This document shows positions 9,801 through 27,367 of a stretch of DNA of 64,000 nucleotides, piece after piece. The first letter of the stretch is position 1, and every line of letters starts with the position of its first letter. The stretch spans positions 1 to 64,000 of the IMG/VR virus record IMGVR_UViG_3300001782_000005; one strand, 5' to 3'. The notes under the pieces are model-generated. The model saw only the letters and a list, made by a program, of their open reading frames with translations, was not told the origin of the DNA and did no database searches. The translations under genes and the position numbers were made by a program.

Positions 9801-12800
9801 CTACAACTACTTCAACGAGTACGTCGACTTCTACAACTAGTACGACTACAACTTCTACAAGCACGTCTACCACAACTACTACTAGTCCTCCACTCTTTGA
9901 AATTAATGAAAGTTGTACTGATTTGTACGGTTCAACTCGTGTGTGTCAAAGTGTTACTCCAGATAGAACTTTCGAGATTACTAGTATAGTTATAGGATCG
10001 TGTCGAATTGTAGGTACTTCTGGTACAGCTAGACTAACTATATATACCTACCATCCTACTAATCCATATAGTGGAGTACTTTTAGGTACTTCGGATGATG
10101 TAGCTATTACAACTACTCCCACTACTCTTACATTCACTTTTGCTTCTCCTGTACAGATAGGAGCAAAATTCTGGGTGGTCATGGAGCCATCTGGAACAGC
10201 AACAAATGCTTATACGTATAGGACTAATTTTAATGCATACGCAGGTGGTTCTATAGGTTACTCATGGGATGATGGTGTAAATTGGGCTTTTGATGCCTTC
10301 GATATGTGTGATATTAAGATCTATGGTAATGATCTTGGCCCAACTACAACAACTACTACAACTTCTACTACTACAACTACAACTACAACCAGCACAACTA
10401 CAAGTACGACAACCTCTACGTCGACCTCGACAAGCACAACTACTACAACTACAACCAGCACAACTACAAGTACGTCAACTACAACCAGTACGACTACAAC
10501 CACAACAACTTCAACTTCTACAACTACAACCTCAACTTCCACTAGTACGACTACAACTTCTACAACAACTAGTACTACGACGAGTACTTCAACGACTTCC
10601 ACTAGTACGACTACAACAACAACTTCTACTAGCACGACGACGAGTACTTCAACGACTTCCACTAGTACGACAACTACAACCAGTACGACAACAACTTCTA
10701 CTAGCACGACGACTACTACAGTTCCTCCAACTACTACAACGTCAACCACAACATCGACTACCACTACTTCAACGACCTCTACTACGACAAGCACTACGAC
10801 AAGCACGACTACCACAACTACGACAACTACAACTTTACCAATTGTCTCGTTTGTAGATGACTATTTTGATAACGCTGTCATTGATGCTTGGTGGCACCAA
10901 GAGCCTGGTTCTACTGGTTCGTTCGTCGAAGCATCGTTAACTATAAATAGTAGTCAAGAGAATATTTTAGCTGGTGGTACAGCAGACTTTAACTGGCTAT
11001 ACCAGGGTATGATTGCTGGAGATTTCGACGTAGTTGCTAAGTTGATTAGCCTTACAAACTTCAATCAAAATCAACAGATAACTGGTTTAGTTGCTTATGT
11101 AGATAATAATAATTGGGCAGCAGTAGGAAAGAAATACTACTTTGGTCAACAAGCGTGGGTTACTCACAGGGTAGGTGGTCCTTACCATGAGAACTATACT
11201 GCTGACACAAACCTACCGTTCTTCTTGAGGATTAGAAGGATCGGTTCTCTATTTGAGACTTTCTACTCAACAAATGGAATAACTTGGACTCCGTATGATC
11301 CTGTTGCTGGTAGTCTTGATAGTACAGCTAATGTTAAGATAGGTCTATTTGCTAATGATCAATATACTACACAATTTAGTGCAGAGTATGACTTTACTCT
11401 TAATAGTGGTTCATTTATAAGTACAACTACAACGACGACAACTAGCACGACAACTACTACGACCTCGACATCTACGACTACAACCACTGCTCCTTGTCCA
11501 GAGTATACTTATTGTGATTCTACTTGTGCTCCTTGCTATGAATTAACTCTCAGTGGTTGGTCTGGATCTTGTGATTTAGCTGATTGCTCAGCTCTTAATG
11601 ATACTTATATCTTAGAACCATATCATGGCCCAGGTGGATGTAAGTGGGCACATTATCTTGGTGTTCTATATGACGATGATAATGAGATAAAGATAACTTG
11701 TGATTATGGAATCTGGGAACTTAGAGTAACAGTAGATGCAACCGCTTGCCTGATATTTGAGGCTGATGCAGTTGTAAATACGTGTCCTCCAGAAGATTAC
11801 ATTTCTTGGACACAAGTGGGTGGAGATTGTGTAGGTGGTTCGTTTACTCTTGTTGGACAACCTTGTCCAACTACTACTACGACTACGACTACGACAACTA
11901 GTACAACTACAACCACAACAACTAGTACAACGACTACTACGACTACTACGACTACTTCAACCATCACTACGACTACACCGCCTGGCATTCCATATGGAAT
12001 CTGTGCTGATACGTCATTCGGTGGAGCGATGTATCGAGCTAATCAACTGACTTGGTCTGATGCACGTGACTCAACTGCTGCTATTGGTCAAGTATTACTA
12101 AATGCAATTGCTACTGGCAATGCAATTAATGTTGTTCACTATCAAAGTAAGGGTACTGATTATTACAATCTTTGGAGGTTCTACTTTAGATTTGATTTAA
12201 GTAATATTCCACTCGGAACGACTATTACAGATGCAAGAATTGGTTTGTATTGGCCCACAGATATTCCTGTAACTACCCCTGCACGCTGGGTAGTTCAGCA
12301 AGGCCCAACAACATTTGATCTTGACGATTTTGGTGGGTTTACTGGACCTGAATTTGGTCATATGCTTTTTGATCCAGATCAGAAATATAATTATGTTTAT
12401 TTAAATTCTGCTGGAAGAGCATATTTAGAGAGCCAAATCGGTGGATATGCGTATCTTTGCCTCCGTGAGTATCATCACGATTATTTAGATGTGCCGCCAG
12501 TTTTCGAGAACCTTAAAACTTATTCAACTTTTTCAGAACCACCACTTGCTAAGGTGGATGTTTATTATGATCCTGATTTAGTCCCGTGTACTTGGTTATC
12601 AAGTTATGAATACGATGTAATTGATAGGTATAAACCAGGTACAATACATGATTTACACTCTGTTGCTTATGGTAATGGCAGATATGTTGCAGTTGGTGAT
12701 GGTGGGAAGGTAATTACCTCTACTGACGACGGAGAAACTTGGATTCAGTTATCTACTTTTACATCTGAAGATCTATTTGTTGTAAGGTATCTGAATTGTA

Positions 12801-15181
12801 CTTGGTTTATTGGCGGACGAAATGTAATTTATACTTCTCAAAATGGTACTAATTGGTCATATAGAGTAAACCCTGCAAATGGTTCAGGTAGAATTGTCCG
12901 AGGATTTGCTTGTAATGAAGGCGGATTAATTGTTGCTGCTGCATGGTCTCATACTATTGAAGAACGCTCTTCTTATTCTACTGACGGAGGACTTACGTGG
13001 ACTGCCCTTCCTAATGGGTGTCCAGATATGTTTAACTTCACTGATTTAGTTTATGGTGATGGAATATTTGTTGGTTGTGGTGGCTCCGGAGTTACTGTGC
13101 CAAGATTTACATATTCATATGATGGACTTAATTGGAGCGCTGCTGATGAGTGGCTTGCTGATAATGCCGTTTATGGACTTGCTTTTAACGGTAGCAGATT
13201 CTTTGCTGTCGGTTCACCAGGTCGTGCTTGGATATCAGATGATGGTGTAAATTGGACTAGGACTTCTCAAGCAGAGGGTGCTCCACGTCTAGATTATGAA
13301 GATGCTTGTTATGGTGTGGTATGGAATGGATGTCAATTTGTAATTGCAGCACATGATACCAGTTCTTCAGATCGTCAAAAGATTATAACAACCTTAGATG
13401 GTTATCAACCATTTACATATGAATATGACCAAGATAGTGGAGAAAGCGGATTAACTGCCATTGCATTTGATGGTATAAGTCGTCACGTACTTGTGGGTTA
13501 CGATGGCCAGGTTTTAACTGCTGATATTCGTACAATAACCACGACTACAACTACAACTATTACTATACCGCCAATAACTACAACTACAATTTGTCCACCT
13601 GATCTAACTGAGGATGATTTTAATGATGGAGCAATAGGTTCTTGGTGGACTCTTAGGGACAAACAAGGTGGAGATTTTGTTGAATCCGGTGGGTATATGA
13701 ATATACTCTCTGGCCCAGATGGATGTGATGCAATAGATCCATGTACTCCAACTTACATTGCTCAGTGTATTGACCCAAATAGACCGTATGACTATTGGGT
13801 TAAAGTTCTCACTCCAACCCTTACTTATGATGGTCAAGAGTATGGTGTGATGTCTAGAAATCTTGCTAGTCTTGATATCTATACTAAAATTGGAGTAAGA
13901 CGAGAAGGTGGGTCTTTATATGTTTATGGTTTGTATTCTGAAACTGGAACTTTAATTGACCAGATAATTCCTCTTCCTCTTGGTATCCCACAAGTTTGGT
14001 TAAGAATATCTAGAGATTCGGGAGGGCTCTTTAGATTTTACTATGCTTTGAGTCAACCTTATTCTATATCTGATTGGACAATACTTAGTTTGGTTAGTGG
14101 GGTATTTACCGATAGTGATAGGCAGAGAGTTGGTCTGTTTGCTACGAACCCATTTCACACAACTACAACGACAACTACAACAACTACAACTACAACAACT
14201 AGTACACTTACAACAGTTAGTACGACAATACCACTCACACCAAGTACAACCACAGTTACATATGCAAGTACTACCACAACGATTACGGATTTTGGTTTAT
14301 GGCAACCTGACTGTACTGGAACTCCTGGTTATCATACTGGTTTACAAGTCTCACAAAGTGTCTATGTTGATCCAGGCACTTGGAAATTTGACGCAATTGA
14401 AATTGGTGATATGGTTAGCACGAGCGGTTATGCTAAAGTTATAATTTATCGAGATACTGGAGGAAATCCAGCCAGTGGAATCTATGTGGGTCAGACAGGA
14501 GTACAGCCAATTTCAGGAGGTTTAGAACCCTATACTTTTTATCTTACTGTTCCTCGACCTATTGTCATTAGTCAAGGGTATGATTATCACCTTGTTGTTA
14601 CTGCTACTGATGCTGGAGGAAATATTGCATACGGACAGACAGTAACCCTATACGCATCTGCAGAGCACTATCCACCAGGTCTAATGTGGTATTATGACGA
14701 GGGAGGTGGTGGTTGGATACAAGACTCTTCTTCAGATGCCTTATGTATTTTTGCACGTGGAATATTAGTTTATACACCTGATCCACCTAGCGGGAATCAG
14801 TGTGAAGATAGATGTGCTTACAGATATTATGTAACGGTATCTGGTTTAACTGGAACTTGTGGATCTTATGATTGTAGCGTATTTAATGGTACCTATGTTT
14901 TGGATCGTCGTCCGAGTCTTTGTGAGTGGAGGCAAACAATAGAAACCGAAATTATGGGGAATCCAATCACAATAACTGCGTCTATAACTATTGGTTATTG
15001 TGGAATTAATTGTTATCTATGGTTATTTAGTATTGGCACCTCTGGATCTGGAACTTGTGGTCTCGCTACTCAATTTGTAACATTACGTGAAGAAGGTGAG
15101 AATTGTCCTCCATTAACCGGATGGTGGAGTGATCCCGGAGCTTGTAATTATGGGGGAACAATTATAGTGTCGCATAGCTAG
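6836..15181 (+). CDS. Giant modular mucin-like putative virion appendage protein (2781 aa)
   Basis: N-terminal DUF2341-like + LamG-like region, two SPRY/B30.2-like domains (about 8095-8655 and 8900-9460; GKWYWEI, IALDLxxxKxWF), DUF1349-like beta-sandwiches, beta-propeller repeats (VAVGDGGKVITSTDDGETW, about 12640-13530), two Cys-rich modules and many Thr tracts. Confidence 0.7.
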   Translation: MAWDNVINLFIDSSKVDENLTDFPVAIDLSNFPEVFVELTEADRKKIKVTTDASGNNQCYVEIEYFDSTAQVGIIHTKLPAIDSTADTSFYFWYDKDEADNTTYVGDISESPAQNVWDNNFVMVIHPQDPSGNGVDDIKDSTSNSNDGTPFNFEAGDLVEIGGGIPGRAVVFEETKNQRIGVPHHSTLAPTRLCLEVFAINENPAWDGPNWNTRSDHLVSKTEAGGYAVGLNESGSYCTDHLYFDVYRNGTYGRACEPSSNISDGWHYVACDYDGRYGVLQIDDTEVQINDAGGTYDITYSNSNMLQIGCEAGPGTSPPSPALLWEGKIGEVRISNASRPDAWRKATYHNLFGTLLRQTWTTTTTTTTTTTTTSTTTSTASTTIPYFPTTTTSTTTTTSTTTTTTTTTTTSTTTTTCPPLEYALDPSYTSADITLSNCNLTATSTGWDGGWDTTYAAPGFPVASGGKWYWEIHIDVGGGQMLGVEKLRETNNHVGSSAAGYGILNNGSIWNGNSQAGDLGADYVTNDIVMIALDLNNLKLWFGRNGSWYGAGANPATGTNPAFTIASGGTYYAGFSLGGGTDRQITVNFGETSFTHTPPSGFNAPEDYTTTTTTTTTSTTVPPTTTSTSTTTSTTTTSTTTTTLPPTTSTTTTTTTTTTTTTTTSATTTTSTTTTTTTSTSTTTTYPPGQLTWDPTWKAAQLQLFNSNLTVKSNASGWKSVGGTLGRAFGKWYWEITIDVMASGNSHMTGIAQSGHLVENRYPGQETTSYGYFDNGQKYHSGGGSVYGNSYSEGNIIGVALDLDSGKIWFAVNNVWQNSGDPAAGTNAAFSGIASATWYPFQGIYDSGDQSSINGDSVTLNYTPPTGYSALGGESVTTTTTTTSTTTTTSTSTSTTSTTTTTSTSTTTTTPPPTTTTTTTTTTTSTTTTTATTTTSTTTTTTSTTTTTTTSTTTTSTSTTTTTPPPTTTSTSTTTTTTSTSTSTSTSTSTTTSTSTSTSTTSTTTTSTSTSTTTTTSPPLFEINESCTDLYGSTRVCQSVTPDRTFEITSIVIGSCRIVGTSGTARLTIYTYHPTNPYSGVLLGTSDDVAITTTPTTLTFTFASPVQIGAKFWVVMEPSGTATNAYTYRTNFNAYAGGSIGYSWDDGVNWAFDAFDMCDIKIYGNDLGPTTTTTTTSTTTTTTTTSTTTSTTTSTSTSTSTTTTTTTSTTTSTSTTTSTTTTTTTSTSTTTTSTSTSTTTTSTTTSTTTSTSTTSTSTTTTTTSTSTTTSTSTTSTSTTTTTSTTTTSTSTTTTTVPPTTTTSTTTSTTTTSTTSTTTSTTTSTTTTTTTTTTLPIVSFVDDYFDNAVIDAWWHQEPGSTGSFVEASLTINSSQENILAGGTADFNWLYQGMIAGDFDVVAKLISLTNFNQNQQITGLVAYVDNNNWAAVGKKYYFGQQAWVTHRVGGPYHENYTADTNLPFFLRIRRIGSLFETFYSTNGITWTPYDPVAGSLDSTANVKIGLFANDQYTTQFSAEYDFTLNSGSFISTTTTTTTSTTTTTTSTSTTTTTAPCPEYTYCDSTCAPCYELTLSGWSGSCDLADCSALNDTYILEPYHGPGGCKWAHYLGVLYDDDNEIKITCDYGIWELRVTVDATACLIFEADAVVNTCPPEDYISWTQVGGDCVGGSFTLVGQPCPTTTTTTTTTTSTTTTTTTSTTTTTTTTTTSTITTTTPPGIPYGICADTSFGGAMYRANQLTWSDARDSTAAIGQVLLNAIATGNAINVVHYQSKGTDYYNLWRFYFRFDLSNIPLGTTITDARIGLYWPTDIPVTTPARWVVQQGPTTFDLDDFGGFTGPEFGHMLFDPDQKYNYVYLNSAGRAYLESQIGGYAYLCLREYHHDYLDVPPVFENLKTYSTFSEPPLAKVDVYYDPDLVPCTWLSSYEYDVIDRYKPGTIHDLHSVAYGNGRYVAVGDGGKVITSTDDGETWIQLSTFTSEDLFVVRYLNCTWFIGGRNVIYTSQNGTNWSYRVNPANGSGRIVRGFACNEGGLIVAAAWSHTIEERSSYSTDGGLTWTALPNGCPDMFNFTDLVYGDGIFVGCGGSGVTVPRFTYSYDGLNWSAADEWLADNAVYGLAFNGSRFFAVGSPGRAWISDDGVNWTRTSQAEGAPRLDYEDACYGVVWNGCQFVIAAHDTSSSDRQKIITTLDGYQPFTYEYDQDSGESGLTAIAFDGISRHVLVGYDGQVLTADIRTITTTTTTTITIPPITTTTICPPDLTEDDFNDGAIGSWWTLRDKQGGDFVESGGYMNILSGPDGCDAIDPCTPTYIAQCIDPNRPYDYWVKVLTPTLTYDGQEYGVMSRNLASLDIYTKIGVRREGGSLYVYGLYSETGTLIDQIIPLPLGIPQVWLRISRDSGGLFRFYYALSQPYSISDWTILSLVSGVFTDSDRQRVGLFATNPFHTTTTTTTTTTTTTTSTLTTVSTTIPLTPSTTTVTYASTTTTITDFGLWQPDCTGTPGYHTGLQVSQSVYVDPGTWKFDAIEIGDMVSTSGYAKVIIYRDTGGNPASGIYVGQTGVQPISGGLEPYTFYLTVPRPIVISQGYDYHLVVTATDAGGNIAYGQTVTLYASAEHYPPGLMWYYDEGGGGWIQDSSSDALCIFARGILVYTPDPPSGNQCEDRCAYRYYVTVSGLTGTCGSYDCSVFNGTYVLDRRPSLCEWRQTIETEIMGNPITITASITIGYCGINCYLWLFSIGTSGSGTCGLATQFVTLREEGENCPPLTGWWSDPGACNYGGTIIVSHS
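8660..8890 (+). repeat. Thr/Ser/Pro-rich tract (77 codons)
   Basis: ACN run between the two SPRY-like domains. Confidence 0.95.
9464..9886 (+). repeat. Thr/Ser/Pro-rich tract (141 codons)
   Basis: ACN/AGT/TCN run with interspersed PPP. Confidence 0.95.
10343..10834 (+). repeat. Longest Thr/Ser-rich tract (164 codons)
   Basis: Almost pure Thr/Ser with a single VPP; mixed ACT/ACA/ACG/ACC codons. Confidence 0.95.
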
Positions 15182-15215
15182 TTGGAACAAACTAACAAAG
15201 GAGAATTATTCATAA

Positions 15216-18194
15216 ATGTCATGGGTAGACAGAACCTCTGATGAGTATTGGGTAGCCGCTCGTGGGGCCGCCTGGAATGCAGGTGGTTGGTGGGATGTAC
15301 CTGGTACGGATACTGTAGAATTGCAGGACAAGGGCAATTGGGCAGAGGGGTTCCGTCCGACTCTTATTAGAATGACTTTTAGTGGAGGTGCAGTTAATCA
15401 ATTCAGAGGTGAGGACGCCTCACCAAATACAATTTGGTATAATGGTTCGTATACTAGCGGAACTTCAGTAGCAATTTCTTGGTCAACAAATGATTTATTC
15501 GCATTATTGTGGTATGCACTTAAAGATCCTCCAGCACAGATAACGAAGATTGAATTCTTTGATCCTGTTATAACCACTACTACTACGACTATGCCTCCTT
15601 GCGGTATAGATGAACCACAATCTGACGATTTTAATAATAGTTCTTTAGAGCCATTTTGGACTTGGCAAGATGTATCTGCTGTAGGAAGTTACGTTGAGGA
15701 AAATACTTATTTAAAAATAACTGCTGGAGATTGGAATAAAGACGATGATCCAATTCCACCAGCTCCTACTTGGGTTTACCAAGATTGTACTTGTGCTTTT
15801 GATATTAACACAAAGGTTCTATGGCCTGAATCACCTCTTGCTAATTATCAGGAATTTGGGATAACTGTTTCAAATTATTACCCGGGCGCCACAAGTTATT
15901 ACCATGCTTCAGTAGAATTTTACTATATAGCTAAACCAGGCGAATACAGAGTAAGAGCAAGTATAATAAGTCAGGTTGGCACTTCTAGTCCGTCAGTTAC
16001 TTGGACTGGCACGCCCGGTGATCCAATATATCTTAGACTTACTCGAGATCCTAGTGGTTTAATAAAATTTTATTGGAGATTAGAAGGTTCTCCTACTTGG
16101 TCAGAGATATCTGTTTTTGACCCACCTTATATAAATGGTTGGTCACAAGTTGGTCTTAATGCTCAATATGCTTCAAGTTTTGGCGCTGCACAATATGATA
16201 TTAGATTTGATTACTTCTTATCTGAACTGCCATCTACTACTACTACCACGACTTCAATAACTACGACAACTACATCAACTCTACCTGAGCAATTTTATGC
16301 ACAGTTTGATTTCTTTGAAGAGTGGACAGAGGCGAGCACTACAACTACAACTACAGTTACTTGGCCACCTGGAGTTTGTCCAGAGCCTGAGAGATATGAT
16401 CCAAGATGGACTGAGAATTATTTTCATGTCGATTGGCCACAAGAATTTGTATTCCAGTCTAATCATAATACTAAATTAGATCACTGTGGTACTTTTAAAC
16501 CTCATGGATTCTTAGGTTATTATCCTGGTGATTTCTCAGTTGATATGAGATTTGAATTATCTAGACCCATGAGAAATGATGGAGTAGATAGAGATTATAT
16601 TGGACTTGCAGTTAATATTGAGAATCTAAGAACCGTCACTATTGTCTTAACGTCAGATACTCAGCAGAAGGCAAGACGACTTGACAGCGATGGTTGTGTA
16701 TTCTCTGAAAGTTTTGGAACTGTCTATAAACCAACTGAAGTATGGTTAAGGGTTTCAAGAACTGATTCAGATTTTAATACCTACTTTTCATATGACAGGA
16801 TTAAATGGTATGAAATTACAGTCGCAAGTCCTCAAACTTATTCTGGTTTAGTCACAGTTCATTTCGGGGCCTATCATCGTACTGGTGGCCAGAAATTTGA
16901 AGCTAGATACCAATTCTGGACTTTATGGCCAGATGGCCCAAGTTGGTTAAAGTCGGGAGCATATTTACCTCATTTAATTGAGTCTGATGACTTTAATGAT
17001 AATATTCTTGATGATCGTTGGTTTAAGAGACATGGTACTTATTTCAGACCAACTTCTTATTGGGCCGAAGGATGTATCTGGGAAGATGATCAGGTATTAA
17101 AAGTTCAGACAAGTCCAGAAGAATTTTATGGTCCCTATAATGAATTTAATGGAACTTGGGCATGGCAAGATGTAAAAGGATTCTTCAACCTTACTGTGAA
17201 AATCAACGTTATTCCTGGCCTTATTGTTGATGGTTCAGAAATGGGTATTATTGCAAGAGAATTGCCTACTGAAGGGGAACCAACTTGTAGAGTTATTTAT
17301 ACAAAACAGGGTGGGAATTTTTACTTCAAACGTGTTGATGTTCAAGGAAGTGGTTCTAGCAGTGAAACGGTAGTAGCGGCTGGTTCTCTTAGTACATTCT
17401 GGTTGGGATTAAGGTGGTATAAAGATGGTTTCACAGCAAGTTATTCTTTGAATGGAATTAATTGGAATCCAATAGCTGCTCCAACTTCTCCAATTACTCC
17501 AACCAACTGGTTACAAGTTGGCTGTGCAGCGAAAGGTTGGACTGAAGTGGGTCCGACCACGACGACAATTACTGTGACAACTACTACTCTATCGACTACT
17601 ATACCTCCTACCCCAACTACGACAAGCACAACTACCACAACTGGTACGACAACATCTACTAGTATAATGACTACTACTAGTACAGTTTGGTATGAGTCGT
17701 TTAATGGTAGTGATGGGGATCCACCGAATCCGGCATACTGGGTAGAGCATGACTCGGGTGGAGTTATGTCAATTCAGAGTAATAAATTAAATTTTGATTC
17801 TTCTTCAATTTTTGCAGAGCATTCTTGGGTTGAAGGAACTTTCCTTATTAGTGGAGATATTGATATAACACTTGAATATGATTGGGATACATTTATGCCA
17901 GCTGTAAGTGGAGATAGTTTTGCTGCTAGATTATTACTTTATAAGGTTCCGGCAGAACCTACAACTCCAAGAGTAGTCATTGGAGTGTACTGGGGAGCTG
18001 GAGATCCTAGTCCAGTATTTAGAGCACATAGTTGGCCAGATGGTAATATAGATTCTATTCAAGTTGCACCGTCTTCGGGGAAATTTAGGATAACAAGAGT
18101 TGGTGCTGTGTGGAAGGCATACTACGAAATTGGATCTGGTTGGGAGTGGGATGGAAATCCAGCAGGGTTAACTTTTTTTAGAGACTTATATTAA
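15216..18194 (+). CDS. Modular Thr-rich protein with DUF1349-like beta-sandwiches (992 aa; probably extends to 18291 via a +1 shift at a T7 run)
   Basis: SDDFN-starting beta-sandwich modules and Thr linkers. The last domain stops early at TFFRDLY; the +1 frame supplies ETYINVSRVEIEF...NVNNLILY up to TAG 18289-18291. Confidence 0.7.
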   Translation: MSWVDRTSDEYWVAARGAAWNAGGWWDVPGTDTVELQDKGNWAEGFRPTLIRMTFSGGAVNQFRGEDASPNTIWYNGSYTSGTSVAISWSTNDLFALLWYALKDPPAQITKIEFFDPVITTTTTTMPPCGIDEPQSDDFNNSSLEPFWTWQDVSAVGSYVEENTYLKITAGDWNKDDDPIPPAPTWVYQDCTCAFDINTKVLWPESPLANYQEFGITVSNYYPGATSYYHASVEFYYIAKPGEYRVRASIISQVGTSSPSVTWTGTPGDPIYLRLTRDPSGLIKFYWRLEGSPTWSEISVFDPPYINGWSQVGLNAQYASSFGAAQYDIRFDYFLSELPSTTTTTTSITTTTTSTLPEQFYAQFDFFEEWTEASTTTTTTVTWPPGVCPEPERYDPRWTENYFHVDWPQEFVFQSNHNTKLDHCGTFKPHGFLGYYPGDFSVDMRFELSRPMRNDGVDRDYIGLAVNIENLRTVTIVLTSDTQQKARRLDSDGCVFSESFGTVYKPTEVWLRVSRTDSDFNTYFSYDRIKWYEITVASPQTYSGLVTVHFGAYHRTGGQKFEARYQFWTLWPDGPSWLKSGAYLPHLIESDDFNDNILDDRWFKRHGTYFRPTSYWAEGCIWEDDQVLKVQTSPEEFYGPYNEFNGTWAWQDVKGFFNLTVKINVIPGLIVDGSEMGIIARELPTEGEPTCRVIYTKQGGNFYFKRVDVQGSGSSSETVVAAGSLSTFWLGLRWYKDGFTASYSLNGINWNPIAAPTSPITPTNWLQVGCAAKGWTEVGPTTTTITVTTTTLSTTIPPTPTTTSTTTTTGTTTSTSIMTTTSTVWYESFNGSDGDPPNPAYWVEHDSGGVMSIQSNKLNFDSSSIFAEHSWVEGTFLISGDIDITLEYDWDTFMPAVSGDSFAARLLLYKVPAEPTTPRVVIGVYWGAGDPSPVFRAHSWPDGNIDSIQVAPSSGKFRITRVGAVWKAYYEIGSGWEWDGNPAGLTFFRDLY

Positions 18195-18290
18195 TGTCTC
18201 AAGGGTTGAGATTGAGTTCTTGCAAGGCAATGCAGGAATAATTAATTCTAATGTTAATAATCTAATTCTATACCAAGGAGCAATACTGTA

Positions 18291-18420
18291 GTTGGAACAA
18301 ATCAATAAAGGAGATAGGATCTAGATGAAGATTTACAAAAAGGTAGTCATAGACATTGAATCAAGTAAGATCTTGGAAGAAGTGTCTTACGACTACAACG
18401 GTCCTATCGCTCAAATGCAG
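18291..18420 (+). repeat. Copy 1 of a ~130-bp dispersed repeat (upstream motif + SD + 32-codon leader)
   Basis: GTTGGAACAAA...GGAGATAGGATCTAGATGAAGATTTAC...GGTCCTATCGCTCAAATGCAG; near-identical copy at 23023-23154. Confidence 0.9.
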
Positions 18421-21400
18421 GGTTCCTGGGTATCACATTTTCTTAATGATGCAAGTGGATGGCAGTGTTATTTTCAGTGTAGTTGGACTGGTTCTTCTTG
18501 GGTACCAAATACTGTCAACATGGGTATTAGAACCAATGTTAGTGCAGTATGGCAAATAGGTTATAGACCTGAGAAATTTAGAGTAACAGTTACTAATATT
18601 ACAGATACTCCAGTACAGTTCTCTCTTACAGATACTGGTTTTACTCCTATTGGTACAACCCCTTCGATTACTGTACCAGGAACGTATGAAGGTACTATTA
18701 GTTGGGCAGGAAATGATATATACCACCTAGACGAGATTCAGTCATCTACTGGTTTTGAAATAACAAATATAGAATTTTTCGAGGGAGCTACAACTACAAC
18801 TACAACAGTAGATCCTTGTTTGTTTCCCCCTGAGTTGATAGTTGATGGAACTGCAGCTCAGGGTAATATAGAGTTTCTAGGAGAACTTGATTGTTGGTAC
18901 TTTGATGCTACGTCAGCTAACAGATATATAATTGAGACGCATTTTGATGGCGGAATTAGTGATACAGTAATAAGTTTAAATGGGCCAGATGACCCAGACC
19001 TTTTTATAGAAGAAAATGATGACGGTGGCGTGGGGACTATGTCCAAGATTGATAGATACTTGGGCATAGGGCGCTATTATGTAAAGGTCTGGGACTATGA
19101 CAACGATGATACTGGTACGTATTTAATTGACATCCGGACTGGTGTTTGGCCAACAACAACAACTACCTCAACTACAAGTACTAGCTCAACGACGACCACA
19201 ACTACTTATCATCAATCGTATCCATATGACGATGGTTGTGGTTGCTTAGCTTCTACTCCACCAGGATTTGGAAATACTTCGGCCCCTAAACCTTGGCACT
19301 TCTATGAACCAGGTTTTGACAGACATTGGGTAGGTAATCCTCCACACTATGCATACTCTGATGATCAAGGTAGAACATGGACTGATTTTCATTTAACTGG
19401 TCCTGAAACTGCTACTGGTTGGGCCATGGTTGATCTTAGTCCAGCTAATGCTTATTTCTATATTTCAAATGCAACAGATGGAATTAATTTTGGCTGGATG
19501 GCCATAAGCAAAGCAACTGGTGCAGCTACTTTTATGGCGGCCGGTACAGCAGCAGGCACAAGAAGTTCATCTATTGTTCAAATTGCTGCTCCTGCTGGAG
19601 TTCAATTTATAACGATGGGGTTAATACCTGGGCCGGCCTTCTCACTGGGAGAGCATAATGATATATTTGGCGCTTACTGGTACGCTAGTAGGGGGACAAT
19701 AGCAGCGCCATATTCTGGTCAAACTGAGTTAATTAGACTTGATTACGATAGAGCAATGTCGTTTGCAAGAACGACTAATGGAGTATATAGCGCAATAGCC
19801 CATATTGTGAGCGATCCACCAGGAGGTCCACCCGTGTGGGGTATTGACGGCCTTACTGGAGTTCAACATATTACAGAGACTGCTGGAATGGACTTTACTG
19901 ATCCTGGTGGGTGGCCAAATAGAGTAAGCGCCTCTGTAGATCCAACTGGCAATGTTCACGTCTTTTTCAGCAAGTTTACTCCTCCTGAAGGTATATACTA
20001 TTCTCGGTGGTCATTTGTATCAGGATGGAGCACGGCGGTTAGAGTTTATGATGATACTCCAGGAAATGTCTTCTCTTTCTATAACCAGCGTTTAGCTCCT
20101 CCAGGTAATGTTGTAGGTTTTGTCACTATCGTAAGCGCCCCTTCTGGATGTCCCGATGATCCCTTCAATCCACCATATTATACCAACTATGTAGGGAGAG
20201 TAAGTACAACTGGAGGGTTTACTTGGAATGAAGGTTGGTTCTGCGGTCAATGCTGGGGTGGAGAATTAGTACCACCTTCTCTTCCTTACCCCTTAACAGC
20301 AGTAGATCAAGTGTCAAGTCTCAACCACTATGGGTGGGATACTAGATGCCCAGCATATGCATATTTAGACGGTTTAACTAGTAGATTTATACATTTTGGA
20401 GAACTTACTTATGGTATAACAACTACTACTATTACTACCACTACGTCAACTACTACTACAAGCACAATAACAACTACCACTAGTACGACAACTACTACAA
20501 CTGCACCGTGTCTAGGTTTAGAGCAAGACGAATTTAATGATACTGTAATAGATCCCAGGTGGGCACTCCAAGATGAAAGAGGAGGAACATTCTCTGAATC
20601 TGGCGGGACACTTCATGTCCATTCAGGTGCAGATGGTTGTAATGCAATAGATCCATGTACTCCAACTTATATTGCTCAATGTGAACCAGCAGGAACAGAA
20701 TTTGATGTTTGGACTAAAATTATAGTTCCTTCATTTACGGGTCAATTTCAAGAGTTTGGTCTCATGTTCAGAGTTTGGGATCAGGAAGATGTCTATGCGA
20801 AAGTTGGAGGTAGAATTTACGGCGGTAATTTATATGCGTTTGCTCTATATTCAAACGTAGGTACTATTAACGATGAAGAGATCCCAATTGTAGCATCTGA
20901 ATTTTGGGTGAGGATACGCCGTAAGTATATTCTTGGGACTCCCCATTTCTCTTATTTTTATTCACTAACTGAACCTATAGTGGAAGGCGATTGGACTCTC
21001 TTTAGTACTATTGATCTATTATTCTATAATGGTTCTAAAGGTTGGGTTGGTCACTATGCTTCATATCCTCTGCCTGCAACAACAACAACGACAACAACGA
21101 CTACTACATCTACATCCACAACAGGTACGGTTATAACCACGACTACTTATTTTGAATTTATAGGAGATTGTCCATGTGGTCAAACTGAGATGCCGCCATA
21201 TGATAGTAATTTTGGTGTCACACATAGGCTGTACAATAGTAATTGGGGACACACTTACTGGGTTGGTTATGACTCTTCTGGTAATGAAAATCCAGGAATA
21301 ATGAGGGATTACACAGACTTAGGCCAGACTTGGCTGATGGACGGTACTGATGCTAAGATTATTAGGTGGTCCTCTCTAGATCTTGGTATTACTATTACTG

Positions 21401-23019
21401 ATACTTATAGTTTTCACCTATCTTATAATAAAGCAAGGGGAGAGTTCTTTGTTAGAGATACGCTTAATAATTACTATCTCTTTCAAATTTTTATGATTGG
21501 TGAGTGTTATTTTGCTGGAACGATTATACCAGTTACTGTATTACCTGGAGGTTCAGCGGATAAATCTGATATTTGGGTTTCTCCCACTCTTAATAATTGG
21601 TTAGTTTACAAAACTTCAACTAATAGAATTTATCATGCGCCATTAGATACCGCTGATCCATTTACATATCCTCATGGTAGAATAACCAACTGGACGTTAG
21701 TTAAAGATTTTGCTAATGGTGCTAATGGAGATAATATAATTGTTCGGAGCAATACTCAACTAGTTGCTATATCTCTAAATAGTGGAATTACCGGTCGTAA
21801 AGAATATTCTTATACAAATGACATAACCACATGGTCAGCTAATGCAGATATTATACCTCAAACGCCATGGTATGACCCTTCTGATTATCCAACTTCGTGG
21901 AGATTTGTGGTTGATACTAGAGGTTATGTACATGGGTTCTTTGCTTATCAAGGTTCAGGCACTAACCCAATACCAGGATCTCAGATTTATCACACGAGAT
22001 TTACAAGTTCTAGTTGGTCAAGTCCTCAATTAATCGGTACAGTAAATATTGGTTTAGCAACTATTGATGGTTCTTTTGCTCAATTCTTACATAGGCAAGT
22101 ATGGGATCCGGAGAAATATCCTGGTTGCTTAGTTTATAGATATCATGGCGGACCTGGCGATTATCACGCAGGTTTCTGGAGTAATGATTTTGGAGATACA
22201 TGGCATTCATATGGTCCTGGTGATATTTGTTTAGATCTAGATTATAATCATACTCAATGGTATGAAACTCGTGAGAGAGAACACATTCCTCCATGTGGTA
22301 TAAATTACAGTTTTCCAGTTGGTATTGAGCATACTGAAAGAATGCCATGCCATAGTTTAGTTGAAGAGTGGTGGACTAGTACTACTTCAACAACTACTAC
22401 AACTTCTACTACTACGACTTCGGTAACTTGGTTTACTACGACAACTACCACAACGTCGACAACTACTACTATTACCACGACAACAACTACTACTACTTCA
22501 ACTACTACTACTTCTATAACTTGGTTTACTACAACAACTGCTCCTCCATCAATCGAAACGATTGATCCTAATGGAGAATATATAGATTATGATTGGTCGG
22601 CAGATCCTGGTCCTGGTCATTATACAATGGTAAATGATTATGGTTCTCCGACACAAGATAATAGTAGGGTTTATCCAACTTATTATGATGCAGGTGAAGG
22701 TTGGGAATTTGAAAACCCAACTTTGGGTACAACTATTGTTGCTATTAAAGTAAAATTAAGAATTAGAACTGACAATGCTCCAACGACTTTTAAAGTCAGA
22801 TGTAGAATATGGGATGGAGCTATACAAATAGGTTCTAATTGGGATATCGAGACTGATAGCACCGGTAATTATGCAGAGTATAGTAACACATGGTCTAGTT
22901 TAAGTTTGACTCCGGCACAACTTTCAGATTTTAGAGTTACACTAACTAATGGTCATGCAGCACCCGGAAATCATTTGGGATCAGTTTCTGCTGCACAAGC
23001 TGACTTATATTATGTTTAG
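18325..23019 (+). CDS. Giant modular Thr-rich putative virion protein (1564 aa)
   Basis: 32-aa leader shared with the next gene; GYRP domain; PPC-like domain (about 18840-19137: DTVISLNGPD...ENDDGG...GRYYVKV); two BNR/Asp-box-like propeller regions (SDDQGRTW, SNDFGDTW); Thr linkers. Confidence 0.7.
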   Translation: MKIYKKVVIDIESSKILEEVSYDYNGPIAQMQGSWVSHFLNDASGWQCYFQCSWTGSSWVPNTVNMGIRTNVSAVWQIGYRPEKFRVTVTNITDTPVQFSLTDTGFTPIGTTPSITVPGTYEGTISWAGNDIYHLDEIQSSTGFEITNIEFFEGATTTTTTVDPCLFPPELIVDGTAAQGNIEFLGELDCWYFDATSANRYIIETHFDGGISDTVISLNGPDDPDLFIEENDDGGVGTMSKIDRYLGIGRYYVKVWDYDNDDTGTYLIDIRTGVWPTTTTTSTTSTSSTTTTTTYHQSYPYDDGCGCLASTPPGFGNTSAPKPWHFYEPGFDRHWVGNPPHYAYSDDQGRTWTDFHLTGPETATGWAMVDLSPANAYFYISNATDGINFGWMAISKATGAATFMAAGTAAGTRSSSIVQIAAPAGVQFITMGLIPGPAFSLGEHNDIFGAYWYASRGTIAAPYSGQTELIRLDYDRAMSFARTTNGVYSAIAHIVSDPPGGPPVWGIDGLTGVQHITETAGMDFTDPGGWPNRVSASVDPTGNVHVFFSKFTPPEGIYYSRWSFVSGWSTAVRVYDDTPGNVFSFYNQRLAPPGNVVGFVTIVSAPSGCPDDPFNPPYYTNYVGRVSTTGGFTWNEGWFCGQCWGGELVPPSLPYPLTAVDQVSSLNHYGWDTRCPAYAYLDGLTSRFIHFGELTYGITTTTITTTTSTTTTSTITTTTSTTTTTTAPCLGLEQDEFNDTVIDPRWALQDERGGTFSESGGTLHVHSGADGCNAIDPCTPTYIAQCEPAGTEFDVWTKIIVPSFTGQFQEFGLMFRVWDQEDVYAKVGGRIYGGNLYAFALYSNVGTINDEEIPIVASEFWVRIRRKYILGTPHFSYFYSLTEPIVEGDWTLFSTIDLLFYNGSKGWVGHYASYPLPATTTTTTTTTTSTSTTGTVITTTTYFEFIGDCPCGQTEMPPYDSNFGVTHRLYNSNWGHTYWVGYDSSGNENPGIMRDYTDLGQTWLMDGTDAKIIRWSSLDLGITITDTYSFHLSYNKARGEFFVRDTLNNYYLFQIFMIGECYFAGTIIPVTVLPGGSADKSDIWVSPTLNNWLVYKTSTNRIYHAPLDTADPFTYPHGRITNWTLVKDFANGANGDNIIVRSNTQLVAISLNSGITGRKEYSYTNDITTWSANADIIPQTPWYDPSDYPTSWRFVVDTRGYVHGFFAYQGSGTNPIPGSQIYHTRFTSSSWSSPQLIGTVNIGLATIDGSFAQFLHRQVWDPEKYPGCLVYRYHGGPGDYHAGFWSNDFGDTWHSYGPGDICLDLDYNHTQWYETREREHIPPCGINYSFPVGIEHTERMPCHSLVEEWWTSTTSTTTTTSTTTTSVTWFTTTTTTTSTTTTITTTTTTTTSTTTTSITWFTTTTAPPSIETIDPNGEYIDYDWSADPGPGHYTMVNDYGSPTQDNSRVYPTYYDAGEGWEFENPTLGTTIVAIKVKLRIRTDNAPTTFKVRCRIWDGAIQIGSNWDIETDSTGNYAEYSNTWSSLSLTPAQLSDFRVTLTNGHAAPGNHLGSVSAAQADLYYV

Positions 23020-23022
23020 ACA

Positions 23023-23154
23023 GTTGGAACAAACTGATAAAGGGGAGATAGGATCTAGATGAAGATTTACGAAAAGGTAGTCATAGATATTGAATCTGGT
23101 AAAATACTGGATGAAGTGTCCTACGACTATGAAGGTCCTATCGCTCAAATGCAG
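23023..23154 (+). repeat. Copy 2 of the ~130-bp dispersed repeat
   Basis: Same upstream motif, SD and leader coding sequence as 18291-18420, with scattered substitutions. Confidence 0.9.
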
Positions 23155-26100
23155 ACAACTACCACTACTATGACTTGCCCACCAACCACAGCAGATTGGA
23201 GCACCTGTTTTAGCGAGTATCCTCTTGGAGCTCAACCATCTGATTGGACGGAGCGCTGGTATCCCGCTAGCGTAGAATATAGAGTAGTTGATGGTTCGGC
23301 TGGTCGTATTGGTGGTCAGTCGATGCGTGAACGCATTTCAGTAGCACCATTTGAGAAATCTATTTCTTGGGATACGCCAGGATTTTTAACTGACGTTGAA
23401 GTGCTTGCTAGGGTTAAGTGTTTAAGTACGACTGGAGATCCAGCTGTTATTGTTAGAGGTTCGGGTGCAGATAGTGGTAAATATGGTTTCTATGCTAAAC
23501 TTAATGATGGATTAAATTTAGAAGTTGGCTATTGGAATAATTCTGCTTTATGGGGGATTCCTTTAGCAGATAAGAGATTCTATCATTACGTTCAGACATG
23601 GTATTGGATCAGATTTAGAGTATATGATAATACTATATTAAAAGCAAAGGTATGGGAAGATGGAGATCCGGAGCCTTCTGACTGGATGATAGAATTATCG
23701 ACTGGATCTGGTCCATCCTTCTCTGGTTGGGTAGGAGTAGGTGGAGTTGGAGCTACTGATAATTTCTATGATGTTTATGAGGTTTGGGATTTAAGTTCAC
23801 TAACGACTACTACAAGTACAACTACTACAACTACAACGAGTACAACTGGAAGCACAACAACTTCAATTACATATTTTACAACCACCACAACTATGCCTCC
23901 ATTTCCAACTACCACAACTGCTCCTCCATTTGAGTGGCTCTGTTGTGATAGATGCCTTCAAAGATCAATGCCGGGGTCAGATGGTTCATGGTCAAGTCTA
24001 AATTTTATAACTTATATTCCTCCAATACAGAGATTCTTTTACTGGTTTTATTATTCACCAGGTTTTAGAGTTCTTAAATATTCAGATGACTTTGGTTTGA
24101 CATGGACTAGTCAAGCGACAAAAGTTTCTTCTGGTCGTTTTTGTGTTGATCCCTATGGTTTGGAATTATACGTAATAGCAGGAACTACACTATGTAAAAT
24201 CCTATCTGGAAACCCTGAACTCTTTTGGCAAACTACACAGACAATACCTGCGGCTCCGGCAGGAACTCAGCATTTAATACTGACAAGACCTAGTGGCGAT
24301 CCTCTTATTGGAGGTTTTCTCATTGCTAATGCTGGAGGGGGGAATGTTACTGTTTATCAACTTGCCGATGAAAATATCTCTATAGCATGGCAATTACGTC
24401 TTAACTGGGCGCATGATCCTCTTGAGACTGTTACTAATAGTGATATTGCATGGTGTCAGACTGGAAGTGGAGGAGCAACCCTCATTATCAAAGAGGGCAA
24501 TAGATTTATGTACGCTGAGTGGGCTGGAAGTTTCTTCCAACCAGTTATACATCCAGCAGAGGTTTCAGATTCAGATTCAACATCAATTCAGAATTGGCAA
24601 GTAGTCGCAGATGACTATGGTCAAACTCACCTTTTCTGGAGAGATGAAGTTGATGGGAATTTACACTATCAAAGATATAGCGGGTCAACTTGGTTAGTAA
24701 ATAAAGTTACTATAGGTCCTATAAGTAATAAGTGGGAAGCTCAATATATAAATAGTGAGTTATTTGGAGTCTCTTATGGTATTCTATTTGCTAGGGAAGC
24801 AACGGTTGGAGGTAAAGGGTACTATATTGATACCGAATTTTCTACTGATTTTATAGAGGGGATTAATTGTTGTGATATAGACTTTAGCTTTATAGATCCA
24901 CCTCAACAACTTACTTTAAAACATAGTCATGTTGTTCCGCCGTGTGGGTATATGATTGTACGAGAGAACATATTTAGTACATCCCACGAATTTCAAATAT
25001 TTGATCCTGTTAGTCAGGAGCAGGCACTAACTACAACAAGTACAACTACGACCACAACTACTACTACAACAACTACAACTACAACTACTACAACTACTAC
25101 AACACCTCCACCTGATTTCGAAGTTGAGTTTGATTTCTTTAGATTTTGGAGTCCTGCGACTACAACCACAATAACAGTTACTACTCCTGCTACTACGACT
25201 ATTCCGCCTCTTCCAACAACTACAACTACTATACCACCATATATTCAATTTATTGTTGAGTTTGATGATTTTGAAGGAACTCCGCTAACCACTACAACTA
25301 CTACTACTACAACACTTACTACTACTACAACCACCTTTACTACCACTACGACAGCAACAACAACTACCGTAACAAGTACTGTAACGACAACTACTCCACC
25401 TCCAAGGAACTTAGAGTATAATAAAGATATAATTGGGACGATTGAAGAAGCAGATGCTGAATTTGAAGAATTGGTTAATACACCTCCAGAATCGAGAGAT
25501 GATAGAAAAGCTAAACTTGAGATATTTAGAGAGAATTGGTCTAGACTATTCAATAGCCCACCTTACCAAGTCGATCCAGATGCTGCTGAGACAATTCTAG
25601 CTGCAATAAATCCAGATTTAAAGAATGATATTGATAGCTGGTTTGATGCCGGAGATGATGCAACCCTAATTGAATATCTATTTACAGATTTACACCAGTG
25701 GATACTTGAGCATTTTGGTGCATATCCAAATCTTGGTTCAATTGCTGCGGGCATTCCATTCTTAATTAAGCAAGTTATTGATTTCTTTAAACCTTATAGA
25801 GCAAGACTCGCTTTCTTTGAATCAGCAGCAATTTTCGATGATGCTCTGTTAGATTCTATTAGACTTGACGACGCATCTTCGATGATTATTTATCAGACGG
25901 TTGTTGATACCCCAGTTGCTGATAGTATTCCATGTTGTCCATATCCAGAGACGTCTCCTTGTGATTCAACAGCTGCTCTATATTATGCAAGAGAATATTA
26001 TGACTGTGGTTCATATTATGATAGTGGAATTGTAGATGATTTAGACGACGTACGTCTTACAGTGCGTCAGGATGTACACGATTTCTACTCCTGCCTACCA

Positions 26101-27273
26101 GATGGTTCAGCAGTAATTGACTACAACTTCGATACAACAGCAACAATAACTTTGAGTACTACACTGCCTCCGGAAATTTGTCAGTGGACTGGTCAAGAAG
26201 AACAGTGGGTTGAAGAAGAAGGACAGTGGATAGATGATGAGAGTCAATGCGTCCCAATTGAGGTACTGTTAACCCAATGGATTAACAATAGTCCGCATTG
26301 GCAGACCCAGTGGGTCGATGAATCTCTCCAATGGGTAGATCAAGAATATACAACTCTGACATTACCTCCTATCCCGGATCCAACACCTCCGGATGAACCT
26401 TTCTATCTATATGGTTATATGGCAGGTGGTTGGCAAGATTTTGATGAAGAAGGTTTATTTGATTGTATGGGTAGTAAGGATATTGTTCAAATTTATATAC
26501 AAGATTCGACCGCGATAATTACCACGACTACAACAGTTACGTCAACAACCTCTACTACAAGTACAGTTACTACTACAACTACTACGACTACTACTACAAC
26601 CTCCACAACATCAACAACTACAACTACCTGCTGGGGTCCTATTGGAGACTCATTTGCTGGACCAGACTATAGTCCGCCTAATCCAGCACTTTGGACTGAC
26701 GTGACGTTTGGCGGAACTGGTAATGAAGTTAGAATTCTAAATAATAAACTCAATCTATACATGTCTGGAACTCCTAACCCGGAAGTTGACTCTGTCTTCA
26801 ATCTTGGAGTTGGAGACTTTGATGTTCAAGTCGATTATGAGATACTCCAAAGTACAATTTCAGAAGACTGGTATATAATTATGTCGGGTTGGGATCAAGC
26901 TGCTATTGGATTCTGTAATGGTACTTATGTTGGAGTAATGAGAGGTGTCTGGAGTGGAGTGCATGAATATCGCCTTTACTACTGTAGTGGCAGTTCGTTT
27001 GGATATTTAGGTGCTGTTGCTACTGCTGATATGTCAGGAAAGTTACGTTTAGCAAGAGTAGGTAGTATATGGTCGACTTATTATTGGAGTGGCGGATCTT
27101 GGGTTCTAATTGCTCAGTGGACACAAGTAACACACCCAGTAGGCAATGTGGTTTATCCATTGACGTTCCAACTTAGAAATTTAACTGGTTCTGCTCCGAT
27201 ACTTGAGATTGCGCTTGATAACTTCTGTTTAGTTAGTTATATAACCACGACAACTACAACTACACCGCCATAG
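23059..27273 (+). CDS. Giant modular Thr-rich protein containing a baseplate-wedge-like segment (1404 aa)
   Basis: Shared leader, ConA-like domain, propeller region (SDDFGLTW), acidic helical segment with VIDFFKPYRARL (FFKPYRARL at 25783-25809), QW repeats, C-terminal ConA-like domain. Confidence 0.65.
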   Translation: MKIYEKVVIDIESGKILDEVSYDYEGPIAQMQTTTTTMTCPPTTADWSTCFSEYPLGAQPSDWTERWYPASVEYRVVDGSAGRIGGQSMRERISVAPFEKSISWDTPGFLTDVEVLARVKCLSTTGDPAVIVRGSGADSGKYGFYAKLNDGLNLEVGYWNNSALWGIPLADKRFYHYVQTWYWIRFRVYDNTILKAKVWEDGDPEPSDWMIELSTGSGPSFSGWVGVGGVGATDNFYDVYEVWDLSSLTTTTSTTTTTTTSTTGSTTTSITYFTTTTTMPPFPTTTTAPPFEWLCCDRCLQRSMPGSDGSWSSLNFITYIPPIQRFFYWFYYSPGFRVLKYSDDFGLTWTSQATKVSSGRFCVDPYGLELYVIAGTTLCKILSGNPELFWQTTQTIPAAPAGTQHLILTRPSGDPLIGGFLIANAGGGNVTVYQLADENISIAWQLRLNWAHDPLETVTNSDIAWCQTGSGGATLIIKEGNRFMYAEWAGSFFQPVIHPAEVSDSDSTSIQNWQVVADDYGQTHLFWRDEVDGNLHYQRYSGSTWLVNKVTIGPISNKWEAQYINSELFGVSYGILFAREATVGGKGYYIDTEFSTDFIEGINCCDIDFSFIDPPQQLTLKHSHVVPPCGYMIVRENIFSTSHEFQIFDPVSQEQALTTTSTTTTTTTTTTTTTTTTTTTTTPPPDFEVEFDFFRFWSPATTTTITVTTPATTTIPPLPTTTTTIPPYIQFIVEFDDFEGTPLTTTTTTTTTLTTTTTTFTTTTTATTTTVTSTVTTTTPPPRNLEYNKDIIGTIEEADAEFEELVNTPPESRDDRKAKLEIFRENWSRLFNSPPYQVDPDAAETILAAINPDLKNDIDSWFDAGDDATLIEYLFTDLHQWILEHFGAYPNLGSIAAGIPFLIKQVIDFFKPYRARLAFFESAAIFDDALLDSIRLDDASSMIIYQTVVDTPVADSIPCCPYPETSPCDSTAALYYAREYYDCGSYYDSGIVDDLDDVRLTVRQDVHDFYSCLPDGSAVIDYNFDTTATITLSTTLPPEICQWTGQEEQWVEEEGQWIDDESQCVPIEVLLTQWINNSPHWQTQWVDESLQWVDQEYTTLTLPPIPDPTPPDEPFYLYGYMAGGWQDFDEEGLFDCMGSKDIVQIYIQDSTAIITTTTTVTSTTSTTSTVTTTTTTTTTTTSTTSTTTTTCWGPIGDSFAGPDYSPPNPALWTDVTFGGTGNEVRILNNKLNLYMSGTPNPEVDSVFNLGVGDFDVQVDYEILQSTISEDWYIIMSGWDQAAIGFCNGTYVGVMRGVWSGVHEYRLYYCSGSSFGYLGAVATADMSGKLRLARVGSIWSTYYWSGGSWVLIAQWTQVTHPVGNVVYPLTFQLRNLTGSAPILEIALDNFCLVSYITTTTTTTPP

Positions 27274-27289
27274 TAGAACAAATAAATAG

Positions 27290-27305: not shown

Positions 27306-27367
27306 TTAAACTCCAATCGTCTTTAAACATTGAGGGTTTAGACGATGCCCTGTAAAAGGAGGTAGTC

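Follow-up and report, generated by a model that had tools for sequence, protein, structure and literature searches.

Predicted lectin-fold modules lacking a last strand, and three free-standing strand-like peptides, in the putative fibre proteins of a marine jumbo phage

Why should a phage keep three beta-sandwich modules that stop before their last strand, and keep elsewhere, isolated between threonine tracts, three short peptides that resemble the missing strand? The question arises in a window of 64,000 nucleotides (positions 1 to 64,000 of IMG/VR record IMGVR_UViG_3300001782_000005), part of the 277-kb genome of a marine jumbo phage, where four giant genes lie in the structural module near a sheath gene (29124-31106), a baseplate wedge gene (49295-51895) and TerL (57793-59421), in a gene order that is the same in relatives. 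The giants, all on the plus strand, are as follows.

6836-15181, plus strand: giant A, 2781 aa, modular, with domains separated by Thr/Ser tracts, SPRY domains by Pfam, and one complete and one truncated ConA-like module.
15216-18194, plus strand: giant B, 992 aa as read in the window but probably 1024 aa (the 1024-aa form is protein P0155; the two readings differ by T7 versus T6 in a run at 18173), with two complete modules, one isolated ("orphan") peptide and one truncated module.
18325-23019, plus strand: giant C, 1564 aa, with one truncated module.
23059-27273, plus strand: giant D, 1404 aa, with two orphan peptides preceding a conserved domain.

The original prediction was that modules at 13601-14158, 16980-17555 and 20521-21078 stop after the VG strand and run into Thr tracts, whereas peptides at 16287-16325, 25114-25149 and 25243-25278 resemble the strand that is missing. 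This observation held: every coordinate is in frame and reads as described. The six modules, the three peptides and their surroundings are listed here, all on the plus strand.

13601-14158, plus strand: truncated ConA/DUF1349-like module of A (aa 2256-2441; "A2244-type"), ending ..RVGLFATNPFH and running into a Thr tract; 42% identical to the C module; its orthologue in protein P0013/contig L102 ends the same way.
16980-17555, plus strand: truncated module of B (aa 589-780; "B586-type"), ending ..LQVGCAAKGW and fused directly behind a complete module; orthologues in proteins P0006, P0007 and P0008 and in contig L086 end the same way, and in two of them this is the protein C-terminus.
20521-21078, plus strand: truncated module of C (aa 733-918; "C728-type"), ending ..WVGHYASYP; in the relatives G002/L006 and L092 the orthologous module is followed by a stop codon 2-3 residues after the strand.
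10838-11395, plus strand: complete module of A, last strand ..QFSAEYDF.
15615-16220, plus strand: complete module of B, last strand ..QYDIRFDYF, with a GH43_C2 Pfam hit.
16362-16934, plus strand: complete module of B, last strand ..FEARYQFW, with a DUF1349 Pfam hit below the curated cut-off.
16287-16325, plus strand: orphan 1, B aa 358-370, EQFYAQFDFFEEW, between Thr tracts.
25114-25149, plus strand: orphan 2 (D686), D aa 686-697, DFEVEFDFFRFW, between Thr tracts.
25243-25278, plus strand: orphan 3 (D729), D aa 729-740; the conserved unit is PPYIQFIVEFDDFEGTPL, 25234-25287 (D aa 726-743), between Thr tracts.
25396-26517, plus strand: conserved domain of D (aa 780-1153), homologous to the middle and C-terminal part of non-Thr phage proteins carrying the FFKPYRARL motif; the N-part of that ancestral protein is a separate gene at G000 266893-267858.
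18325-18420, plus strand: 31-aa N-terminal peptide of C (MKIY.KVVIDIES..), followed by a Thr tract.
23059-23154, plus strand: the shared 31-aa N-terminal peptide of D; the starts of C and D are 89% identical in nucleotides, and the same peptide heads P0006, P0013 and ORFs of G002, L086 and L087.

We first asked whether the matched numbers survive a census of the complete genome. An HMM of the six modules, run on all six-frame ORFs, finds exactly six, of which three reach profile position 190 and three stop at 182. A genome-wide scan for peptides of 7-30 aa with at least three aromatic residues between Thr tracts finds only the three orphans. The truncated modules keep the conserved N-terminal DDFND motif, but the C-terminal strand xFxAxFDYF, which directly follows the VGxxA strand in the three complete modules, is absent from them and is found only as separate peptides.

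We then asked whether the orphans resemble the last strand of the family by more than eye. A last-strand matrix was built from 69 complete modules of unrelated proteins and scored over 108,293 12-mers of the genome. Orphan D686 ranks first, at 20.3 bits, a true last strand (that of the first complete module of B) ranks second, at 19.1 bits, and orphan 1 ranks third, at 16.4 bits, with the next hit at 9.7; this is far more than chance would give. Orphan D729 is weaker, at rank 51, but because two genuine last strands of this genome rank 21 and 804, it is compatible with the matrix although not unique. The shared MKIY peptide is not strand-like in the same matrix.

The modules resemble DUF1349 and related ConA-like domains, only in part by Pfam sequence match but clearly in the predicted fold of the B586 module. 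PF07081 scores 25.5 bits, below its cut-off of 32.4, and PF17851 scores 23.8 bits, above its cut-off of 22.7, both in B only; the family profile finds 4,662 relatives. In an AF2 model of whole B, only the third module (B586-780) folded confidently, at a pLDDT of about 90, and Foldseek and VIA superpose it on solved members (VIA Z of 18.6 to 3mep, 18.2 to 3o12 and 19 to GH43 C-domains). These alignments, rather than model coordinates, indicate that an extra strand beyond residue 780 is needed to match the C-terminal strand of the reference, and a slot is therefore left open. In the model the slot was filled by a low-confidence strand (903-909) of the next domain, which we do not trust. PHROGs searches with the other domains returned nothing.

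Related lineages carry both features. The window has three truncated modules and three orphans, G002 has two and two (with only 33 kb of its 113 kb scanned for orphans) and L092 has two and two. The A2244-type module and orphan 1 occur together in the window and in L086 and L102; L087 also has orphan 1, but its contig starts after where that module would lie, and both are absent from G002 and L092. This support comes from three or four closely related lineages, however, so that the matched counts are not independent events. Searches of viral contigs with the orphan alignment returned the same contigs and of metagenome contigs none, those with the truncated-module alignment returned the same contigs plus L102, and more distant relatives, with sheath identity of 68% or less, carry no such modules within 10 kb of the sheath. 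Among 556 domains in the 150 best of the 4,662 hits, truncation occurs only in proteins of this clade.

The orphans are under purifying selection. D729 has 16-17 of 18 residues identical across lineages, with 4-8 synonymous against 0-2 replacement changes in 18 codons. D686 and orphan 1 keep F, F, D, F/Y, F and W at alternate positions while the other positions vary, with D686 following the pattern xFxxxFD(F/Y)FxFW in four lineages. Orphan 1 is conserved as AEFEAPFDFFGEW in L086, L087 and L102, even where the neighbouring complete module is absent, as it is in P0007. The flanking Thr tracts, in contrast, vary in length.

It might be supposed that the last strand lies in cis beyond the Thr tract, and candidates exist in TTYFEFIGD behind the C module and ITDFGLW behind the A module. 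We rejected this idea because both stretches score low in the strand matrix, ITDFGLW belongs to the next domain, which is conserved in P0013 and G002, and in relatives the truncated modules often end the protein (..WVGHYASYTTP then stop; ..NVGLFASYVS then stop; ..AAKGWVS plus a short Thr tail then stop), leaving no downstream strand to complete them.

The original prediction offered three explanations, namely donor-strand complementation in trans that clips the giants together, shuffling of gene segments by recombination through the Thr tracts, and misassembly across repeats, and it is partly supported, in that comparative evidence favors the first, the second is real but insufficient, and the third is refuted. 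In the view we favor, to which we assign a probability of roughly 0.55, the four giants are virion fibre or decoration proteins of a jumbo myovirus, with globular modules strung on Thr-rich linkers. Three modules would be natural acceptors lacking the C-terminal strand of the family, and three donor peptides carrying its motif, displayed on flexible Thr linkers in other giants, would insert into the vacant slots in trans, completing the sandwich and tying the giants together non-covalently. The inferred pairs are the C module with the first D orphan, the B module with the second D orphan, and the A module with the B orphan, which would make D a two-donor hub and link A-B-D-C. Our analysis establishes the truncations, the strand likeness of the orphans, their conservation, the matched numbers and the colinearity of the assemblies; that the modules and peptides bind one another, and which binds which, is inferred, without structural evidence of binding. 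A complex prediction with the C module, the B module and the D orphan pair scored 0.65, against 0.00 with unrelated partners, but the control that replaced the B module while keeping the C module and the orphan chain scored higher, at 0.81, so that these scores are evidence neither for nor against pairing. An AF2 model of D aa 640-1160, made to see whether the orphans dock in cis on D's own domain, had a mean pLDDT of 33 and is uninformative.

If the pairing is real, it would be donor-strand complementation outside pili and biofilm fibres, in a lectin-type jelly roll, used to build a virion appendage from separate giant proteins; our literature searches on strand complementation in phages found no such case. 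It would explain how modules can be shuffled freely at Thr tracts between genes while the particle still assembles, because the clip travels with the module. It would also offer small natural peptide/domain pairs with possible specificity for protein engineering, and, with short peptides and 190-residue domains, it is directly testable. In its boldest form, which we consider about as likely as not, the virus would assemble a branched super-fibre in which acceptor modules, often at protein C-termini, capture cognate donor strands on a hub protein with type-specific pairing, a pilus-like assembly principle in a different fold, not previously described for phage particles.

Several other possibilities should be considered. 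The one that survives best, although we think it unlikely, is that the truncated modules are self-sufficient sandwiches one strand shorter, and that the orphans are conserved for an unrelated reason, such as forming sticky aromatic knots, binding another virion or host component, or pairing with each other as a hairpin in D. In its favor, the B586 module is modeled at a pLDDT of about 90 without the strand, the two D orphans always sit together just upstream of the conserved D domain, and D729 fits the strand matrix poorly. Against it, two orphans are the best and third-best matches in the genome to the last strand of the family, counts match in three lineages, orphan 1 co-occurs with one module type, and distant homologues of the D domain (proteins P0002-4) have no orphans, so the domain does not need them.

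Less likely still, complementation could occur in cis or within one protein species, with orphan 1 filling the truncated module of the same B chain, or of another B copy to give head-to-tail polymers, or with the Thr-rich tail behind each module occupying the slot. B does carry both orphan 1 and a truncated module, here and in L086, L087 and L102, and AF2 draws a short strand, 785-788 (TITV), just behind the module at a pLDDT of about 50. But orphan 1 stays disordered in the whole-B model, at a pLDDT of about 25, P0006 and G002 have the B586-type module without orphan 1 in the same protein, C728-type modules end 2-3 residues after the strand in two lineages, and A, C and D each carry only an acceptor or only donors.

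Equally doubtful is that the modules and peptides are functionless debris of illegitimate or homologous exchange through the Thr tracts. Hundreds of imperfect ACN repeats provide recombination substrates, module order differs between lineages with breakpoints at the tracts, and one run contains a Thr-tract length variant; recombination is real as background evolution. It does not explain, however, why orphans and truncations are conserved and matched in number: synonymous changes dominate in D729, each truncation point is conserved within its type in every lineage that carries it, and complete modules have no Thr tract between the VGxxA strand and the last strand where such a cut could occur. 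Finally, although all the data come from short-read metagenomes and the tracts are repetitive, misassembly is refuted, because a second 224-kb assembly matches window positions 657-19258 with a single T of difference, three IMG/VR assemblies are 100% identical over all or part of 19124-32000, single Logan contigs from three runs span 13500-19400 with no other letters, the only differences seen being that one in a homopolymer and one 12-nt tract variant, and the same architecture recurs in diverged relatives.

Among known systems, the closest analogy is to donor-strand complementation and exchange in chaperone-usher pili, and also in TasA fibres and archaeal bundling pili and threads. There, as proposed here, a beta-sandwich lacking its C-terminal strand is completed by a strand from another polypeptide, which links subunits non-covalently. 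The analogy is not exact, because the predicted fold is a ConA-like jelly roll rather than an Ig-like pilin fold missing strand G, the putative donors are internal peptides flanked on both sides by Thr tracts rather than N-terminal extensions of the next subunit, no chaperone or usher was found (without a targeted search) at a locus that is the structural module of a phage, and the partners would be different giant proteins of a virion rather than a homopolymer. With DUF1349 (PF07081), the GH43 C-terminal ConA-like domain (PF17851) and the LamG-type lectin fold, the modules appear to share sequence family and share the predicted fold, but three of the six copies lack the last strand, which among the 150 best database relatives occurs only in this clade. 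In engineered split beta-domains, such as split GFP strand 11 and SpyTag/SpyCatcher, derived from CnaB2, a short strand peptide, as is proposed here, completes a truncated beta-domain and joins two proteins; those systems are engineered, and Spy forms an isopeptide bond, whereas this would be a natural and presumably non-covalent version. In cohesin-dockerin assembly of cellulosomes, the docking principle and fold are different and there is no sequence relation, but, by analogy only, large modular proteins with Thr/Pro-rich linkers are, as is proposed here, assembled through dedicated small docking modules onto a scaffold with several sites.

The sequence is the start of a complete 277,131-bp phage genome with direct terminal repeats. 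Sequencing runs that hold it come from marine sediment and seawater metagenomes, and the nearest cultured phages, jumbo phages such as phiR1-37 and AR9, share only about 30% sheath identity. Upstream of the sheath lie four co-directional giant ORFs, each a chain of globular modules separated by Thr/Ser tracts. The features that orient the locus are:

6836-15181, giant ORF A
15216-18194, giant ORF B
18325-23019, giant ORF C
23059-27273, giant ORF D
29124-31106, tail sheath
49295-51895, baseplate wedge
57793-59421, minus strand, large terminase

A fifth Thr-tract protein (1287 aa; 783-4646) carries an internal duplication (2394-2662 against 3522-3790, 76% nucleotide identity) and repeated modules ending ..IENIEFF/W, but it holds no DUF1349-like module and no orphan strand. 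A conserved 30-nt motif (AGTTGGAACAAA..AAAGGAGA) sits just upstream of the start codons of B, C, and D (15175-15204, 18285-18314, and 23017-23046, respectively) and may be a shared late promoter or translation signal. C and D also share a 31-aa N-terminal peptide (MKIY.KVVIDIESGKIL.EVSYDY.GPIAQMQ; 18325-18420 and 23059-23154), followed at once by a Thr tract. The same peptide heads several giants in relatives (proteins P0006 and P0013 and giants of the related contigs and loci G002, L086, and L087), and it is probably a common docking peptide to the virion.

The original prediction held that three modules of a beta-sandwich family stop short of their last strand, whereas three isolated peptides resembling that strand lie between Thr tracts elsewhere. 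This observation proved correct, as every one of these segments is in frame and reads as proposed. An HMM built from the six ConA/DUF1349-like modules, run on all six-frame ORFs of the whole genome, finds exactly six modules, of which three reach the last profile position (190) and three stop at position 182, right after the VGxxA strand:

A aa 1339-1520, complete module
B aa 134-333, complete module
B aa 390-567, complete module
A aa 2258-2442, truncated module (A2244-type)
B aa 589-778, truncated module (B586-type)
C aa 733-918, truncated module (C728-type)

A genome-wide scan for short aromatic peptides isolated between Thr tracts returns only the three orphans, one in B (orphan 1) and two in D. 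To ask how strand-like these are, we built a position matrix of the last strand from 69 complete modules of unrelated database proteins and scored it over all 108,293 12-mers of the genome. The first D orphan ranks first, at 20.3 bits, a genuine last strand ranks second, at 19.1 bits, and the B orphan ranks third, at 16.4 bits; the next hit scores 9.7. The second D orphan ranks only 51st, although two genuine last strands of this genome rank 21st and 804th. Thus, the observation is real and far beyond chance. In addition, tiny aromatic islands of the form S(I/V)T(W/Y/F)F, or IPYF, are embedded in Thr tracts at about 22420-22530 (C aa 1366 and 1398), about 23866 (D aa 270), and 7985-7996 (A aa 384), and they recur in G002 (SVTFF and SITFF).

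The arrangement is not an assembly artifact. A separately assembled 224-kb contig (G001) matches positions 657-19258 of the window, differing by one T in a homopolymer. Three IMG/VR contigs from different samples are 100% identical over all or part of 19124-32000, and single Logan contigs from three runs span 13500-19400 with no other letters. These runs may include the source sample. Even so, two assemblers and several data sets agree. The homopolymer at 18173-18179 is T7 in the window but T6 in the second assembly and in Logan contigs of all four runs. With T6, ORF B runs 32 aa further (1024 aa; protein P0155), and its last domain regains a C-terminal strand (..SRVEIEFLQG..), so that the end of B in the window is probably a one-base error. 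One run carries a 12-nt insertion at 17615, in the Thr tract behind the truncated B module, indicating that the Thr tracts vary in length within natural populations.

Pfam gives weak DUF1349 and GH43_C2 hits. The AF2 model of whole B is poor overall (mean pLDDT 55), but the truncated module (aa 586-780) reaches about 90 and superposes on the DUF1349 structures 3mep and 3o12 and on GH43 C-terminal domains at Z 18-19. In those alignments, the C-terminal strand of the reference is matched by model residues about 903-909, a low-confidence strand borrowed from the next domain. The predicted module itself therefore leaves that slot open, and the filler is not trustworthy. Orphan 1 did not dock in cis in this model.

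Truncation of this kind is unusual. The family profile finds 4,662 proteins in 1.84 billion. In the 150 best of these (556 domains), a module that runs into a linker or a stop within 8 residues of the VGxxA strand occurs only in P0006, P0007, P0008, and P0013, all four of which are close relatives of the proteins of this phage. Elsewhere, the last strand, with consensus xFxAxFDYF, is present.

Three further lineages carry the system. First, G002 (113 kb; loci L006 and L084) has a B586-type truncated module inside a 1375-aa protein, a C728-type module that ends its protein (..WVGHYASYTTP, then stop), and a D-like protein carrying both D orphans, but it has no A2244-type module and, in the 33 kb of it scanned for orphans, no orphan 1. 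By eye alone, several ORFs upstream of the giant cluster in this relative (L084, G002 13800-33000, minus strand; reverse-complement positions 1365-6605) look like glycosyltransferases, which might glycosylate the Thr tracts. Second, in L092, a 24-kb ENA contig covering the whole cluster up to the sheath, the A-like protein ends with a truncated module (..NVGLFASYVS, then stop), P0006 ends with a B586-type module, and the D-like protein carries both orphans. Third, in a partial lineage comprising L086, L087, and L102, P0013, with an A2244-type module, is followed by a B-like protein that keeps orphan 1, although the neighboring complete module is absent. In L086 this B-like protein ends with a B586-type module; the longer L087/L102 form (P0007) carries further domains after it. 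Counts of truncated modules to orphans are 3:3 in the window, 2:2 in the scanned part of G002, and 2:2 in L092, although the lineages are few and closely related. The extra module type and the extra orphan appear and disappear together, and truncated modules at protein ends exclude completion by downstream sequence.

The orphans are also conserved. Across four lineages, the second D orphan keeps 16-17 of 18 residues and shows 4-8 synonymous against 0-2 replacement codon changes. The first D orphan and orphan 1 vary at alternate positions but keep F, F, D, F/Y, F, and W, whereas the Thr tracts around them change in length. We infer that this pattern fits a strand with one buried face.

Of the three interpretations offered in the original prediction (strand complementation in trans, recombination through the Thr tracts, and misassembly), the first is the one we favor; the interpretation is supported in part. 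In this view, the acceptor modules, often C-terminal, would capture donor strands displayed on Thr linkers of another giant. Co-occurrence suggests three pairs: the C module with the first D orphan, the B module with the second D orphan, and the A module with the B orphan. D would then be a hub with two donors. The conserved domain of D (aa 780-1153; 25396-26517) is the C-part of a widespread phage protein (P0002-4, motif FFKPYRARL), whose N-part (36% identical to P0002 aa 1-302) is a separate 329-aa gene at 266893-267858 of the complete genome (G000), about 10 kb upstream of the giant-protein cluster across the genome ends. An ancestral protein has been split into two genes, and by inference D may itself be anchored by a second split. 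In jelly-roll topology the first and last strands are neighbors, which would explain why the truncated modules keep the conserved N-terminal DDFND motif. The truncations, the likeness of the orphans to the last strand, their conservation, and the matched counts come directly from the sequences, whereas binding between orphans and modules, and the identity of the pairs, are inferred. A single prediction of the complex gave no answer in either direction, and structure prediction for D did not give a usable fold. We place the probability of this mechanism at roughly 0.55.

Recombination through Thr tracts is clearly at work, as there are hundreds of imperfect ACN repeats and module orders differ between lineages, but it accounts for the shuffling and not for the conserved, matched split. 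Misassembly is excluded.

Literature searches on strand complementation in phages found no phage precedent. The proposed system is not a member of the chaperone-usher pilus, TasA, or archaeal pilus systems: the fold differs, the donors are internal rather than N-terminal, and, without a targeted search, no chaperone or usher was found. Nevertheless, it would work like the donor-strand complementation of those systems.
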